In this document: piece after piece, positions 37,709-63,449 of the stretch
Layout: every line of letters begins with the position of its first letter
How positions within the stretch are numbered: position 1 is the stretch's first letter
DNA from: Octopus sinensis
Lineage: Eukaryota
Direction of reading: 5' to 3'
Length of the DNA stretch: 64,000 nt
Assembly (NCBI RefSeq): GCF_006345805.1
Contig: NW_021836310.1
Coordinates: forward strand, 1 to 64,000
Position numbers and translations under genes: made by a program
Notes under the pieces: model-generated
What the model saw: only the letters and a program-made list of their open reading frames with translations
The model's database searches: none
What the model was told of the DNA's origin: nothing

Positions 37709-37752
37709 GACGCCCGCCGTGCCAAAACCACCAAAATCCACTGAAAAGACAA
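37709..37752 (+). CDS. Predicted exon: Pro/Thr-rich stalk of a single-pass membrane protein, (x)TPAVPKPPKSTEKT, phase 2 to 1
   Basis: Strong acceptor (tgtttttgcatctttttgcag) and donor (a|gtaagc); 44 nt open frame that joins in frame to the TM exon at 38806. Confidence 0.65.
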
Positions 37753-37819
37753 GTAAGCCATTAATTATATCCCTTGCTTTGTCTATTACTATCCTCATTG
37801 CTGAGAGACGGAAACGATA

Positions 37820-38340
37820 ACACCGTCTCTCTCTCTCACTCTCTCTCTCTCTCTCTCTCTCTCATTCTCTCTCTCTCTCTCTCTCTCTCTCTCTCTCATT
37901 CTCTCTCTCTCTCTCCATCGATTCTTCGCCTCGGACCATGGTTGTCCATTCAGACAGAGATCTTCCGGTGCATTCTTTGACATCCTCTAGTCATCATCTT
38001 CTCGTTCTCTCACTTCTTCAGTTCTCATTCATCTTCCTTCTTGGGTGTGGAGACAGAATTTTTGGGCCCTGATGACAAACCCCAAGTCCTATAGATTTCC
38101 CTTCCTGACAGTTAGCAAAGGGTTTCTTTCTATTCCCACTTCTTCAAGTACTAACTTATTTGTTCGATGGTCACACCAGCTGACCCTCAATAGTCTTCAA
38201 AAGCTTTAGGTTTAGCAGTGTTGTTTGCACTTAGGGTTCAGCTTTCACATCCATACAGTGCAATAGGCCAAAGTGATGTCTTCGGGGGCTCTAATTTGGT
38301 GTCCTTGCTAAGAGGTCTGTCATTCTTGATTGTATGATAT
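37820..38340 (-). mobile_element. RTE-clade LINE 3' fragment with (GA)n tail
   Basis: WPIALYGCESWTLSANNTAKLKAFE and downstream RTE-like C-terminus in broken frames. Confidence 0.7.
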
Positions 38341-38534
38341 ACCATTGATACAAAATTTATACATTAAAGAGTGAAACGAGGAAACGCACATCATATTCAC
38401 CAACACAAATTAATGAGGGAGCCTACGACAGAAGGAGTATCTAACATTTGGCCCTTGGCAATGCTTGCCTGGTCCTCGGCTCAATTTCACAGAACAATTG
38501 GTTTAACTTTATTAAAAAATTATTATTGGCATGC

Positions 38535-38732
38535 TGGCAGAATTGTTAGCACGCTAGGCACGATGCTTAGCTATGAACTCAGAGAGTTCAAATTCCGCCG
38601 AGGTCGACTTTACCTTTCATCCTTTCGAGATCGATAAATTAAGTACCATACAGTTGAGTACTGGGGGGGGGTCGATATAATCGACTTACCCTCTCCCTCC
38701 AAATTTCAAGCCTTGTGCCTTTAGTGGAAAGG
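38535..38732 (+). mobile_element. SINE B monomer; further copies at 44988-45160, 45450-45945, 53505-53612, 59850-60110
   Basis: Family B motifs. Confidence 0.8.
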
Positions 38733-58736: not shown

Positions 58737-60984
58737 TTTTCATTCAAATCGTGTGATACCCATTTGTCGAGATTTTTTGATTTTCCGATCGCATGTAAAT
58801 GGTTGCAGGCAGTTTTCTGGCTAATTTGAAGTTCTTTTGCCAGTTCTCGAGTGGTTTTACGTGGATCTTTCTCAATGACGGTCTTTAATTGACTGTCATC
58901 GATGACAGATGGGCGTCCACTACGCTCACGATCTTCAAGGCTCAGGGCTCCACTGCGAAATCATTTAAGCCATTTTCTAGCTGACCACTCACTGGTCATC
59001 TCCTCACTAAATGTTTCGTTGATATCGCGAGCAGTTTCAGCTGCTTTACGTCCTATTTTTGAAGTCGAATAGCAAAATTGCTCGAATATCGCATTTTGAC
59101 AGTTCCATTTCAGATGATTGTAACAAGTCTTTGTCTATATTATCAGACAATTTCTTAAAAATGTTTTTAAAAATTCAAAACTCTGCAAAAATCTGGTACA
59201 AATTCTTCATGGTTCAAAACCTTGCTTACTTTTTACTCACCATGATATATATATATATATATATGCATATGATTGATTGATTCTAGTTTCAGCTCATGAG
59301 CTGTGGCCATGCTGGGGCACCACATATAAATAAATATGTATATTATATATAAAATATATTATACATGTTATATATATTTAAATATATGTATGTGTGTGTG
59401 AGTGTGGAGGTGTGTATAAACATGTGTGTGTGACTATGTTTGTGAGCGAATATGTGTGCGTATATATTTTCTTACATTTTCGTTCTTTGGTTTGCTTTAG
59501 CCATCGCACTTAATGCCATGCTGGAGCACTCACGTATGTTCTTAACATGCAAACATAAAGGCATCTGCAACATTCAGTATATTAATATATTTTAAATATT
59601 CATAGTCATGGGGCAGAGTGAAACCTTGGGGAGAAAAATTTAGCTGCTGGTGTCAAAGATATCTTTCAATTAATAAAAGTCAATGTTAAAGGGAGTATGA
59701 GAGGAAATCCTGGTGATTCCGAATGCGACAAAGTCGGAATCTATATTCTCTTTGATATATAAGTAGTTATGCAACGATTTGGAAAAAGACTAAACCAAGA
59801 TCCACACTGCAACACACAAATCCTATAGATATATATTGATTTAAAATTTTGGGACAAGACCAGACGTTTCAGAGGAAAGGCTAAGTCGAATGCATCAACC
59901 CCAGTGTTTAACTGGTACTTATTTTATCGGCCTCAGAATGTAAAGACGGACGAAATGCCAGTAAGCAACTTTCCCGGCGTGCTAACGATTCTGCCAGAAT
60001 ATATTGATTTAAAAATTTTCTGGCAAGGCCAGCAATTTCAGACGAGGGGTTAAGTCGATCACATCAGTCCCAGTGTTCAGCTGGTACTTATTTTATCGAC
60101 CCCCGAAAGGAAAATAAAAATCCAAATTGCACGGTACATATGTTTCTTAGCTAGATAAAGCTCTAGATGTAACTGTTATGCAAATGAGTTATGCCCAACT
60201 TAGCGAATCATCATGGATGAAACGAAGGTTACATTGTCACTCGGAATTCCTAAATCAACTCCACTTGCGTTGAGTTTAACTACACACACACACACACGCA
60301 CGTATATATATACGTGTATATGTATACGTATATATATATATATTATATATATATATATATATGTGTGTGTGTGTGTGGGTGGGTGGGGGTGTGTGTTTGT
60401 GTGTGTGTGTGTGTGTTTGTATAAGTATATGTGTATGTGTATGTATGTATGTATGTATATAATAAATATCAGTATCACACACTTAATGTATACGTGTTGT
60501 TAATGCCCCTTTAAAGACGTACAGGTGAAACGGAAACCTCCACGAAAGTGAACAAGAATGACAGATATTGATATTTCACAGTCCTCTCCACCCACCAGTG
60601 TCGCACATTCACCCCGCTTCCGAAACGAGCTAGAATTGCCAGATAGAAGTATATACAACCAGCGTAAAATCTATTTACTGATGTGACAAAACGTTGCACA
60701 AGTAGAACAAAATTCAAATCTTAAGTCTAAAGAAGCTCTGTAATGTAAACATTATTAATGCCATATACTGGGATGGAGGTGGAGCAGTTTTTCGTTTATT
60801 TTGGCAATTTCATGGCAATGTGTTTCTGCAGAAATGTAAACATGATCAATGCCATATACTTAATGAGTGTACATTGTTAAACCCTCGTAGCTGAAGTATC
60901 ATGTCTTGCAGACATAAGTTTAAATGCGTAACACACGGCTCTTTAACGCCACGCTTCGTTTACGCATTCATATACTTTTTTATT

Positions 60985-61372
60985 CTTTTGCTTGTCTCAG
61001 TCATTTGACTGCGGCCATGTTGTAGCATCGCCTGTAGTCGAGCAAATCGACCTCAGGACTTATTCTTTGTAAGCCTAGTACTTATTCTAGCGGACTGTTT
61101 TGCCGAACCACTAAGTTACGTAAACACACCAGCATCGTTTGTCAAGCAATGTTGCGGGGACAGACAGACAGACACACACACACACACACACGCAAACACA
61201 CATACACGCAAACACACACACATACATACACATATATATATATACGACGGGCTTCTTTCAGTTTCCGTCTACCAAATCCACTCACAAGGCTTTGGTGCGC
61301 CCGAGGCTATAGTAGAAGACACTTGCACAAGATGTCATGCAATGGGACTGAACCCGGAACCATGTGGTTGGT
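60985..61372 (-). mobile_element. SINE family A; partial copies also at 23340-23560, 31850-31975, 39884-39970, 41565-41765, 43070-43265
   Basis: Shared tail agtcatttgactgcggccatg and body. Confidence 0.8.
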
Positions 61373-63404
61373 AAGCAAGATACTTACCACACATATCTAT
61401 GTTATTAAACTGTTATGTTAAGAAAGCGGCGTGAATGAATTCGAACTAGGATCCTCAGATCTTGTACCCATCTTCTTTATTTACTCGGCCCTTTCCTCCG
61501 TGCAATGGTAATTGTAATTGTAATAGTTACACTAATAGCAGCAGTGATAGTATTGGTAGTTTTAGTACAATATTATTATTATTATTATTATTATTATTAT
61601 TATTATTATTTTATTATTATTATTATTATTATTATTATTATTATTATTATTATTTTCATTATTATTATTGTTAACAAGGATTGTTATGCTGGTGATGTCA
61701 TTGGTAATGATGTTTGTGATGTCGATTGTCATTGATTAATGACATTAACAGCAATTGTAGTAGTAGTAGTAGTAGTAGTAGTAGTAGTAGTAGTAGTAGT
61801 AGCAGCAGCAGCAGCAGAAGCAGCAGCAGTAGTAGTAGTAGTAGTAGTAGTAATAGTGCTGTTGTTGCTGTTGGTGCTTCGTCTTTATTTCGTCGTTTTA
61901 ATAATTTCAACGTTGACCTTGGTGTTCCCTTCTTTCCCTCTACACATTAACTTTGACCTTTGACCTCAATGTAAAAAAGCGCTAAACACATATGTCTATA
62001 TCAGTGACGTAGCTAACGTGTGCTCCTGCCAGGAGCAGCCCTTTAGTTTGCCCCTCCTCCCCTGTACTGGCTTCTACAGCAGACTCAAACGTGCCGCCTC
62101 TATGAATGCATCACCTTTGGTGTACCACCACCTACACTGATGATGAGCAATCAGCGGTATCCATGAATAGATTATTCTATTAATTTCAGTGAACGAACGA
62201 ACGGTGGTGGGTTTGTTTTTGTTTCTTATTAAGGGATTTAGAGGGACAAAACTGCGTCAACGTCGAATTCACCAACCATTCAGGGCCTCTTGATGCCATG
62301 TTTTAGCTAGGAGGGCCCGTGAAAGCCTAAACCCAAAGCAAATGATGAAAAAGATTTTTTTTTAAAAAGGAAAGTACCTTTCTACTGGGTCCGAATAGAA
62401 GCTTCCTCATCAAATTGTATAAAATACAGAACCTTGAATACTGAAACGAAATGAGAACGGAACACTAAGACAACACAATCAATAACTAAAACCATGTTAC
62501 ACATTTTTACATGTGGAACGAAAAAGAAAAAAAAACAGACCATTAAGGAAAAGTTTTACGATAAAACAATGGAAAAAGAAAGTTAAACAGTTCGCCATTT
62601 TGAAAACGAATTTCCTATCCTCAGTCGTGTCCTTTTGCATTTCTTTTTGACTGATCCCTGTGTATTTCTGTCCATTTTTATGTTTTAAATTTCACCGGTG
62701 AAGTTTTAATGTGGCCTTGTAATTCAGTCAGAAGACACAATATTTCTTTTATTTCATTGCATTCACCATTTGCTGTTTCGTTATGCGATGTAATAATATC
62801 TAAAGAAAAATGTTATTGTTGTCTGTCTAACGTGTCACGTGTTACGCAGGCTGATGGCGCTGGTGTTGGTGTTTGAAGAGGGGAGGGTACATATTGAAGA
62901 TGAGATTGTCGTGGCACTTTTTCCTCCTCAAGTTTTGATCTCACTTTTATCTTTTGTTGGTTTTCTTTTAAACATTTTTGTATATTTTATTTGAAGTGCT
63001 GGTGTTATTGAATTGATAGGTTGATTATATTATTTATGGAGACGTCGATATGTGTGTGTATGCATGTACATACTTGTATTCAAACACATATATGTAACAT
63101 ATATTACATATAATCACATACACGCACGTACACACACGCACGCACACATACGCACGTAGACACACACACTTACACACACACACACATGTATATATATATA
63201 CACTTATATGTAGCATACGTACATAGCAATACTTACATATAAATATATATATATACACACACACACATGCATATCTATATACATACACATGCTTATATAT
63301 ATATATATATATATTCATACACATATCCAATCCATAGATACACACAGACACACACACACACACAATTCAGATATAGAATAAATATATTATTTATTGTTTT
63401 CTAG

Positions 63405-63449
63405 GTTTGCCATCACCAATATCGGATACATACGATGAAACTTCTGAAA
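63405..63449 (+). CDS. Predicted cytoplasmic exon (S/G)LPSPISDTYDETSE, phase 1-1
   Basis: Acceptor tttattgttttctag, canonical donor a|gtaagt, 45 nt; DTYD tyrosine motif. Confidence 0.7.

Follow-up and report, generated by a model that had tools for sequence, protein, structure and literature searches.

The first 64,000 nucleotides (nt) of Octopus sinensis contig VCDQ01005606.1 (GCA_006345805.1), to which we refer as the window, carry between 37.7 and 63.4 kb what is, with very little doubt as regards the gene structure, the 5' two-thirds of a single cephalopod-restricted gene, LOC118762022, that had been annotated in part. The gene is a real one for a single-pass membrane protein, as the initial annotation of the window had proposed, and we consider our reading of the gene as a whole somewhat more likely than not, although the adaptor or scaffold function that it gives to this small protein, which is suggested by the architecture, is put forward tentatively. 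Over positions 34544–64000 the window matches the same positions of the contig (73,745 nt) with 100% identity. The initial annotation described a hidden receptor or adaptor gene assembled from nine consecutive short segments (e1 to e9, Table 1), with a cytoplasmic tail composed of tyrosine-motif exons. Six of the nine segments are real exons (one of them with a corrected border), a seventh is probable, and the remaining two, which hold the tyrosine motifs in question, are probably products of chance. The gene was also hidden only in part: LOC118762022 and two O. bimaculoides UniProt entries already span e7 to e10 and the last 19 nt of e3, whereas the transmembrane (TM) exon and e4 are absent from the Octopus models. 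We take the product to be an orphan adaptor-like membrane protein, some of whose exons were already on record.

Homologues and the exons they support

A search with the spliced peptide against 5.8 billion proteins returned four relatives: P0001, a hypothetical protein of Argonauta hians that contains the TM exon, e3, e7, e8, e9, e10 and more; P0002, which is the partial O. sinensis model LOC118762022 itself, starting with MAEASE within e3 and spliced straight to e7; and P0003 and P0004, the two O. bimaculoides entries, which contain e7, e8, e9, e10 and the C-terminus (e8 being absent from P0004). An exhaustive phmmer search with P0001 alone as the query against 1.84 billion representatives, together with a profile search, returned cephalopod proteins only, all of one family. 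Six further proteins (P0005, P0006 and P0009 to P0012) came from contigs of 1.2–1.9 kb assembled from public sequencing data (Logan; runs SRR8281689, SRR30931879, SRR30931883 and SRR27666070), and P0007 and P0008 were added as further members of the cluster of P0005 by cluster look-up. The transcript-derived proteins are 39–44% identical to the Octopus protein, compared with 63–68% for Argonauta, so their source species are more distant than Argonauta, and they probably belong to decapodiform cephalopods. No Pfam model reaches its threshold with this protein, the best matches being driven by the TM region (SIT, PF15330, 13.3 bits against a cut-off of 27.6, TM region only); a PDB sequence search found no relative, and literature searches for the gene identifiers and run accessions found no papers.

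The window was also compared with the 72.6-kb Argonauta locus (L001), in which e2, e3, e4, e7, e8, e9 and e10 recur in the same order and on the same strand, with the flanking AG and GT kept, while the intron sequence around them is unalignable between the two animals. The codon comparison, given in Table 1, shows many synonymous differences. A whole-contig tblastx comparison with the same locus, after entropy filtering, returned the known exons and a shared repeat resembling a short interspersed nuclear element (SINE), and no extra exons. The real exons within the window are e2, e3, e4, e7, e8 (extended to 55239) and e9.

Table 1. Segments of the gene in the window and beyond, with codons compared between Octopus and Argonauta (phases are those of entry and exit)
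Feature	Position	Strand	Peptide and remarks	Identical codons	Synonymous	Non-synonymous
e1	37709–37752	+	TPAVPKPPKSTEKT; phase 2-1; probable			
e2, TM exon	38806–38898	+	TNDTQQSNVPVGLIAALILLCVLIAALIFLW; 93 nt, phase 1-1	11	8	4
e3, juxtamembrane type A, polybasic	44500–44562	+	VKYRKREKKRRNRRIMAEASE; 63 nt, phase 1-1	4	9	7
e4, juxtamembrane type B	44640–44708	+	VKYREHKRKIQERVLERMMRRTQ; 69 nt, phase 1-1	11	6	5
e5 as proposed	48423–48482	+	EVIYINRLERSEEKENIYYI; unsupported			
e6 as proposed	51267–51350	+	VSLEQVYMTLSWRNQTVMDRSANEYTVE; unsupported			
e7, tail exon	52493–52561	+	ADTESNGQTISRDTSKDLNKSES; 69 nt, phase 1-1	10	9	3
e8, tail cassette	55192–55239 (first proposed to 55221)	+	ENLLYPTSGHSNSVEE; 48 nt as corrected	6	3	6
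e9, tail exon	63405–63449	+	SLPSPISDTYDETSE; 45 nt, phase 1-1	8	4	2
e10	65518–65562 (contig)		beyond the window	6	4	4

How far chance could account for the nine-segment chain is best judged before its parts are taken up. All nine peptides are found on the + strand at exactly the borders proposed, with AG before and GT after each, and all segments from e2 on have a length divisible by 3 and phase 1-1, the splice product being one open frame of 185 amino acids (aa). This pattern taken alone is weak evidence, because the intron between e4 and e7 (44709–52492) by itself has 188 AG..GT segments of 30–93 nt that are open in phase 1-1, and microsatellite pseudo-open reading frames (ORFs) saturate the window. 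A reader might thus suppose that there is no gene here and that open segments of repeat-rich, non-coding DNA line up in this chain by chance. That supposition is refuted for e2, e3, e4, e7, e8 and e9 by homologous proteins in at least four cephalopod sources, transcripts among them, and by conservation that is confined to the exons and bears the mark of purifying selection; we regard it as having practically no remaining probability.

The same abundance of open segments bears directly on e5 and e6. Neither has a counterpart in the Argonauta e4–e7 interval or the rest of that locus, among the annotated proteins or among the transcripts, and no other segments of the nine have splice signals so weak (pyrimidine tract 0.47 in e5 and 0.59 in e6, donors gtttat and gtatat, respectively). 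The G+C content (GC) of e5 is 0.28, which is intron-like against a regional mean of 0.36, whereas that of e6 is 0.48 and exon-like; in the surroundings of e6, nothing but the flanking microsatellites has a match elsewhere. Most likely, e5 is a chance open AG..GT segment in the e4–e7 intron and e6 is a chance segment too, its composition leaving a low residual chance of an Octopus-only cassette exon. That either or both might be young Octopus-specific cassettes, rare or limited to certain tissues, would fit their symmetric phase 1-1, the GC and usable acceptor of e6, and a gene that demonstrably tolerates in-frame cassette exons. Against this stand the lack of conservation and of any model that includes them, their weak donors and the low GC of e5, and with 188 equivalent chance segments in that intron two attractive peptides are to be expected, so we think such cassettes improbable.

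With e5 and e6 goes the idea of a tail that docks Src homology 2 (SH2) domains. All of the YxN (YINR) and YxxL (YMTL) motifs sit in these two segments, and the proposal of a Grb2-type SH2-docking receptor fails because its motifs lie in unsupported sequence. Immunoreceptor tyrosine-based inhibitory and activation motifs (ITIM and ITAM) fare no better: the patterns, YxxL/I-x6-8-YxxL/I for an ITAM and [ILVS]xYxx[ILV] for an ITIM, are absent from the supported exons, and even within e5 and e6 YINR and YMTL form neither, the stretch LEQVYMTL of e6 having Q at position -2 and so being no ITIM. The only conserved tyrosine sites in supported exons are YP[ST] of e8 and a YxxMY motif that lies beyond the window. 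The full nine-exon model, in which all segments share one transcript and the tail is a series of SH2-docking tyrosine modules on a receptor or adaptor, can point to segments that do splice with AG and GT into one open frame and of which seven are real or probable. It is nonetheless very improbable, given that YxN and YxxL occur only in the two unsupported segments with weak splice signals and 188 chance candidates around them, that e3 and e4 never co-occur, that the ectodomain measures 22–29 residues, and that there is no ITIM or ITAM; nor does a linear joining of all nine find support, for the same pair e3 and e4 is never seen together and e5 and e6 have no backing of any kind.

The downstream end of the gene lies outside the sequence at hand. 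The gene runs past the window through e10 to further exons past the end of the contig, which stops at 73,745, ahead of the last exons (YSQMYE... and ...KINV); the RefSeq model is partial because of this stop. The last exon that P0002 does have, TTATEMCLNLEPSGCVANMLATQPHL... at contig positions 72488–72610 (37945–38067 of L002), matches a repeat family found elsewhere in the window (for example at 14799–14870) and also matches itself in reverse; it is apparently an annotation artefact that derives from a repeat and arose because the contig ends there.

Membrane anchor, alternative exons and tail

The TM helix is the most constant part of the protein. Its exon, e2, occurs in P0001 of Argonauta and in every full-length transcript, and 16 of the TM residues are invariant, a GxxxA pair included, in the pattern P-V-G-L-I-x-A-x-I-L-x-x-V-L-x-x-A-L-I-F-L-W-x-K-Y, which covers the TM segment and the first juxtamembrane residues; the TM columns are almost invariant, compared with a tail that is about 40% identical. 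The AlphaFold model of P0010, a homologue with the e4 type of exon, computed with the family alignment, has one continuous helix over residues 32–75 that comprises the TM segment and the e4-type exon, and nearly all remaining residues have a predicted local distance difference test (pLDDT) score <50 and no secondary structure, which is consistent with a tail that would be intrinsically disordered. About 1.5 kb of the intron between e2 and e3 is duplicated in direct tandem (40391–41999 and 41891–43503, 97% identical).

On the extracellular side the protein is short. In four transcript contigs an in-frame stop lies 7–8 codons 5' of the first ATG, so the short N-terminus is complete. The transcript proteins begin M(TKAEAKM)ATTVSTPQTRTTPKGDGNGSG and proceed directly to the TM segment, with 22–29 residues before it; judged from its sequence, this N-terminus has no signal peptide or folded domain. 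Its sequence MTKAEAKMATTVSTPQ is hydrophilic, and it is followed by a single hydrophobic stretch of 23 residues and then by K/R-rich sequence, from which the positive-inside rule would make the protein type III (signal-anchor, N-out). A receptor with a concealed ectodomain does not survive these complete transcripts, which yield just the 22–29 extracellular residues and no signal peptide, and they likewise led us to reject the tail of a protocadherin or immunoglobulin (Ig) receptor, since they are without such an ectodomain. An N-x-S/T sequon stands 6–10 residues ahead of the TM segment, as NDT in e2 (38812–38820) and as NGS or NAS in transcripts (P0008, P0011); it is consistent with an extracellular N-terminus, but is perhaps too near the membrane for glycosylation.

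Within the Octopus window, the candidate for the ectodomain is e1. Its splice signals are good (acceptor tttgcag, donor gtaagc), and in its richness in T, P and K it is similar to TPQTRTTPKG at the N-terminus of the full-length transcripts. Of 310 open candidates with the right phases in the 10 kb 5' of the TM exon of Argonauta, only 2 have strong splice signals, and one of the strong ones (L001 4842–4876, cag/GACGACC...GCTG/gtaagt, encoding TTKAPTSTEAA) has the same GACG start, phases and S-T-E core as e1. This counterpart speaks weakly for e1, which we take to be probably a real ectodomain mini-exon. Neither e1 nor e2 has an in-frame ATG, so at least one coding exon must exist 5' of e1, and positions 1–37000 are where the first coding exon of the gene is to be expected. 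Comparison of that interval with the Argonauta locus, which reaches only 10 kb 5' of its TM exon, found no conserved coding exon on either strand. The interval consists mostly of microsatellites and transposon fragments, among them what looks by eye like a piece of a Tc1/mariner-type transposase at 27749–28066 on the minus strand, with no Pfam match at E <= 0.01.

At the cytoplasmic membrane face, the gene offers a choice between e3 and e4, which the initial annotation had placed in the chain one after the other. The e3 type occurs in P0002, in Argonauta P0001 and, as IKYKKRKNHRGIRRKFKS, in P0005, P0007 and P0008. In contrast, e4 is in no annotated Octopus or Argonauta model, and yet the Argonauta locus has its counterpart at L001 23806–23874, of equal length, with AG and GT kept and 18 of 23 residues identical (tblastn E = 3.7e-9), the DNA similarity ending within a few bases of the exon edges; an e4-type exon (IKYREHKKRIQEQVLERMLRRNQ) also replaces the e3 type in P0006 and P0009 to P0012. 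The pattern of conservation argues that e4 is a genuine exon under purifying selection. Ten sequences cover the region (the six transcript-derived proteins, P0007, P0008 and the gene models P0001 and P0002), and each of the ten has exactly one of the two types, five having e3 and five e4, and no sequence has both or lacks both; P0007 and P0010 differ solely in the e3/e4 swap and one 9-aa cassette. Judged by these sequences, e3 and e4 behave as mutually exclusive exons and are alternatives rather than neighbours in one chain.

The two exons are adjacent in Octopus, of the same phase and both begin with VKYR, although the similarity between the e4 and e3 types is weak (41% over 22 aa, E = 0.24). 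The pair is old, since octopods and the distant transcript species alike have both types. In being adjacent, similar in length and phase and used one at a time, they are like the mutually exclusive tandem-duplicated exons of tropomyosin (exons 2/3), of voltage-gated channel segments and of the Dscam clusters; they are unlike those pairs that are policed by frame-shift and nonsense-mediated decay, in that inclusion of both e3 and e4 would keep the frame. Frame-based surveillance cannot enforce their exclusivity because both are symmetric. Steric hindrance in the short intervening intron was rejected as a general mechanism, for the distance is 77 nt in Octopus (44563–44639) and about 10 kb in Argonauta. 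Within the 77-nt intron, ttttaac is likely to be a branch site; it stands some 45 nt from the 5' splice site. The Argonauta e3 (L001 13628–13699) is 72 nt long, not 63, and adds G-L-C while still being of phase 1-1: there is GG at the position of the Octopus donor, and splicing uses a consensus GTAAGT that lies 9 nt downstream.

The tail, as the initial annotation had it, is made of small symmetric phase-1 exons that are skipped or swapped in frame, and the pairs P0003/P0004, P0011/P0012 and P0007/P0010 document this in relatives. P0004 of O. bimaculoides is without the e8 of P0003, the junction codon changing from S to G, and P0012 is without the e7- and e8-like exons of P0011, the junction codon changing from P to A; both changes are what phase-1 splicing predicts. 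Exons e7 and e9 are each found in P0001 to P0004. All models that include e8 read ENLLYPTSGHSNSVEE or the Argonauta equivalent and use a donor at 55239 (AAA/gttagt), so that the true end of e8 is 18 nt beyond the 55221 first proposed, the additional codons, SNSVEE, and the donor being conserved as coding in Argonauta. The internal GT at 55221–55222 (ACA/gtaatt) is also GT in Argonauta (ATA/gtaaca, L001 about 35505); it is possibly a minor alternative 5' site that would drop SNSVEE in frame, and no model or transcript uses it.

Several short motifs are conserved along the tail, namely YP[S/T] in e8, PSPxS in e9 and LDP[IT]EE in e10. The e8 tyrosine, as YP[ST], is common to the Octopus models and the two transcript sets, Argonauta reading LYEP, while the PSPxS core of e9 is invariant and the tyrosine of that exon becomes Phe in the distant transcripts. 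Beyond the window, YxxMY is conserved (QYSQMYE, QYTQMYE, YYQDMY, YYRDMY), and the protein ends in -K-x-x-V (-KKYIV in transcripts, -TKINV in O. bimaculoides).

The window also holds repeats. On the minus strand of the e8–e9 intron, positions 56279–58960 hold remnants of a mariner-type transposase, with a match to Pfam Transposase_1 at 56279–56524 (E = 8e-14) and one to HTH_32 at 58646–58960 that is below the cut-off (25 bits against 33.7); between them lie about 2 kb of ORFs (56954–58581) with no Pfam match, possibly a nested insertion. The SINE-like repeat has many copies in the window, as at 2695–3035(-), 8651–9103(+), 18238–18620(-), 45003–45389(+) and 61009–61418(+). In peptide they are 65–72% similar to the Argonauta copies at L001 3958–4068 and 26646–26762, so the repeat is an old octopod family.

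Possible function and rival readings

The architecture of the protein comprises a short Thr/Pro-rich ectodomain, a conserved TM helix with GxxxA, basic residues next to the membrane, and a disordered tail that is long, acidic and rich in Ser/Thr. If these parts work together as we propose, the conserved TM helix, through its small-xxx-small motif, would mediate docking to a second copy of the protein or to another membrane protein as partner, the choice of exon would offer either a polybasic stretch (e3) or a helical extension (e4) at the membrane face, and the disordered tail would show cytosolic proteins a set of splice-variable linear motifs (YP[S/T], PSPxS, LDPIEE, YxxMY and the C-terminal hydrophobic-x-Val). 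The protein as a whole would then be a membrane-tethered adaptor or scaffold. A more specific version, in which a coleoid-specific adaptor or accessory subunit uses an ancient swap of a polybasic segment for an amphipathic helix to re-route coupling of the TM partner to a combinatorially spliced docking tail, is speculative, and we hold it to be unlikely as worded.

The leukocyte transmembrane adaptors (LAT, PAG1/Cbp, LAT2/NTAL, LIME1, SIT1, TRAT1 and LAX1) have a very short ectodomain, a single TM segment and a long disordered docking tail. The octopus protein shares with them the short ectodomain, the one TM segment, the absence of an enzymatic domain and the disordered, motif-bearing tail. 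It differs in that the juxtamembrane CxxC of the raft-targeted members is absent, the TM segment being followed by W-[VI]-K-Y-[RK] and neither juxtamembrane exon having a Cys in any species; in having one or two conserved tyrosines in a Ser/Thr/acid-rich tail instead of many YxN or YxxL/V sites; and in matching no family model and being restricted to cephalopods. From ITIM/ITAM immune receptors it is set apart by the absence of the motif from the supported exons and of a folded Ig or lectin ectodomain, there being 22–29 aa in its place. By analogy, the protein may work like the vertebrate transmembrane adaptors, but in sequence and motifs it is not a member of that group.

Two other roles would fit parts of the same architecture. 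Like KCNE or FXYD proteins, the protein could serve a channel, pump or receptor as an accessory subunit, with the TM segment and juxtamembrane helix tuning the partner and the tail being secondary. The TM segment with the first juxtamembrane residues is by far the most conserved part (16 invariant columns, GxxxA), the predicted topology is type III with a sequon ahead of the TM segment, and the e4 type is modelled as one helix with it; KCNE and FXYD proteins are similar in their small extracellular and TM part, their sequon in a short N-terminus and their TM–juxtamembrane helix core, and KCNE is also without a signal peptide. By sequence, however, the protein is related neither to KCNE or FXYD nor to any Pfam family, and it has no FXYD motif; a tail of 150–330 aa with several conserved motifs, several times longer than theirs, points to more than a tuning role, so that we view an accessory subunit as an unlikely but not negligible reading. 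A linker to trafficking or the cytoskeleton, of the type of the glycophorin C, syndecan or neurexin tails, with a FERM/4.1 site, a class II PDZ ligand and acidic and YxxM sorting signals, appears slightly less likely still. The polybasic e3, the hydrophobic-x-hydrophobic C-termini (-KKYIV and -TKINV, ending in -YIV and -INV), the acidic Ser clusters and the conserved YxxM all fit it; glycophorin C is likewise type III with a short Ser/Thr-rich ectodomain, and all three proteins have a basic juxtamembrane stretch and such a C-terminus. These motifs are short and were matched by eye, though, and neither the window nor the contig reaches the C-terminal exons. No Pfam match to Syndecan or related families was found, homology to the three tails is not detectable, and the tail here is much longer and acidic.

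The membrane-tethered adaptor or scaffold that we favour has its own weaknesses, which should be set against it. The architecture is the sole guide to its function, with no Pfam or PDB relative to compare. Tyrosine signalling is limited to one or two sites at best, given that the e9 tyrosine is Phe in the distant relatives. Mutual exclusivity of e3 and e4 is drawn from ten sequences, and a form with both exons or with both skipped would stay in frame. The first coding exon was not found by tblastn and blastn-short with the transcript N-terminus and 5' untranslated region (UTR), which returned noise only, and exon use in Octopus is drawn from gene models and from other species.

For the annotation of the locus, the gain is a partial model that is corrected and extended, with the TM exon, the unannotated conserved e4 and a probable ectodomain exon added in Octopus. 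The case also carries a caution on method, for AT-rich and repeat-rich introns abound in open AG..GT segments bearing attractive motifs, and here the motif-bearing segments are exactly the unsupported ones. What emerges is an orphan cephalopod gene that encodes a membrane protein with a short ectodomain, conserved alternative juxtamembrane exons and an exon-shuffled disordered tail, and whose switch between e3 and e4 offers mutually exclusive splicing in a clear and testable form, in a lineage that is neither arthropod nor vertebrate. Membrane adaptors confined to one lineage are candidates for a part in cell biology peculiar to cephalopods; in the more specific version given above, which we hold to be unlikely, this protein would be a lineage-specific signalling hub, possibly tied to the neural or sensory innovations of cephalopods.

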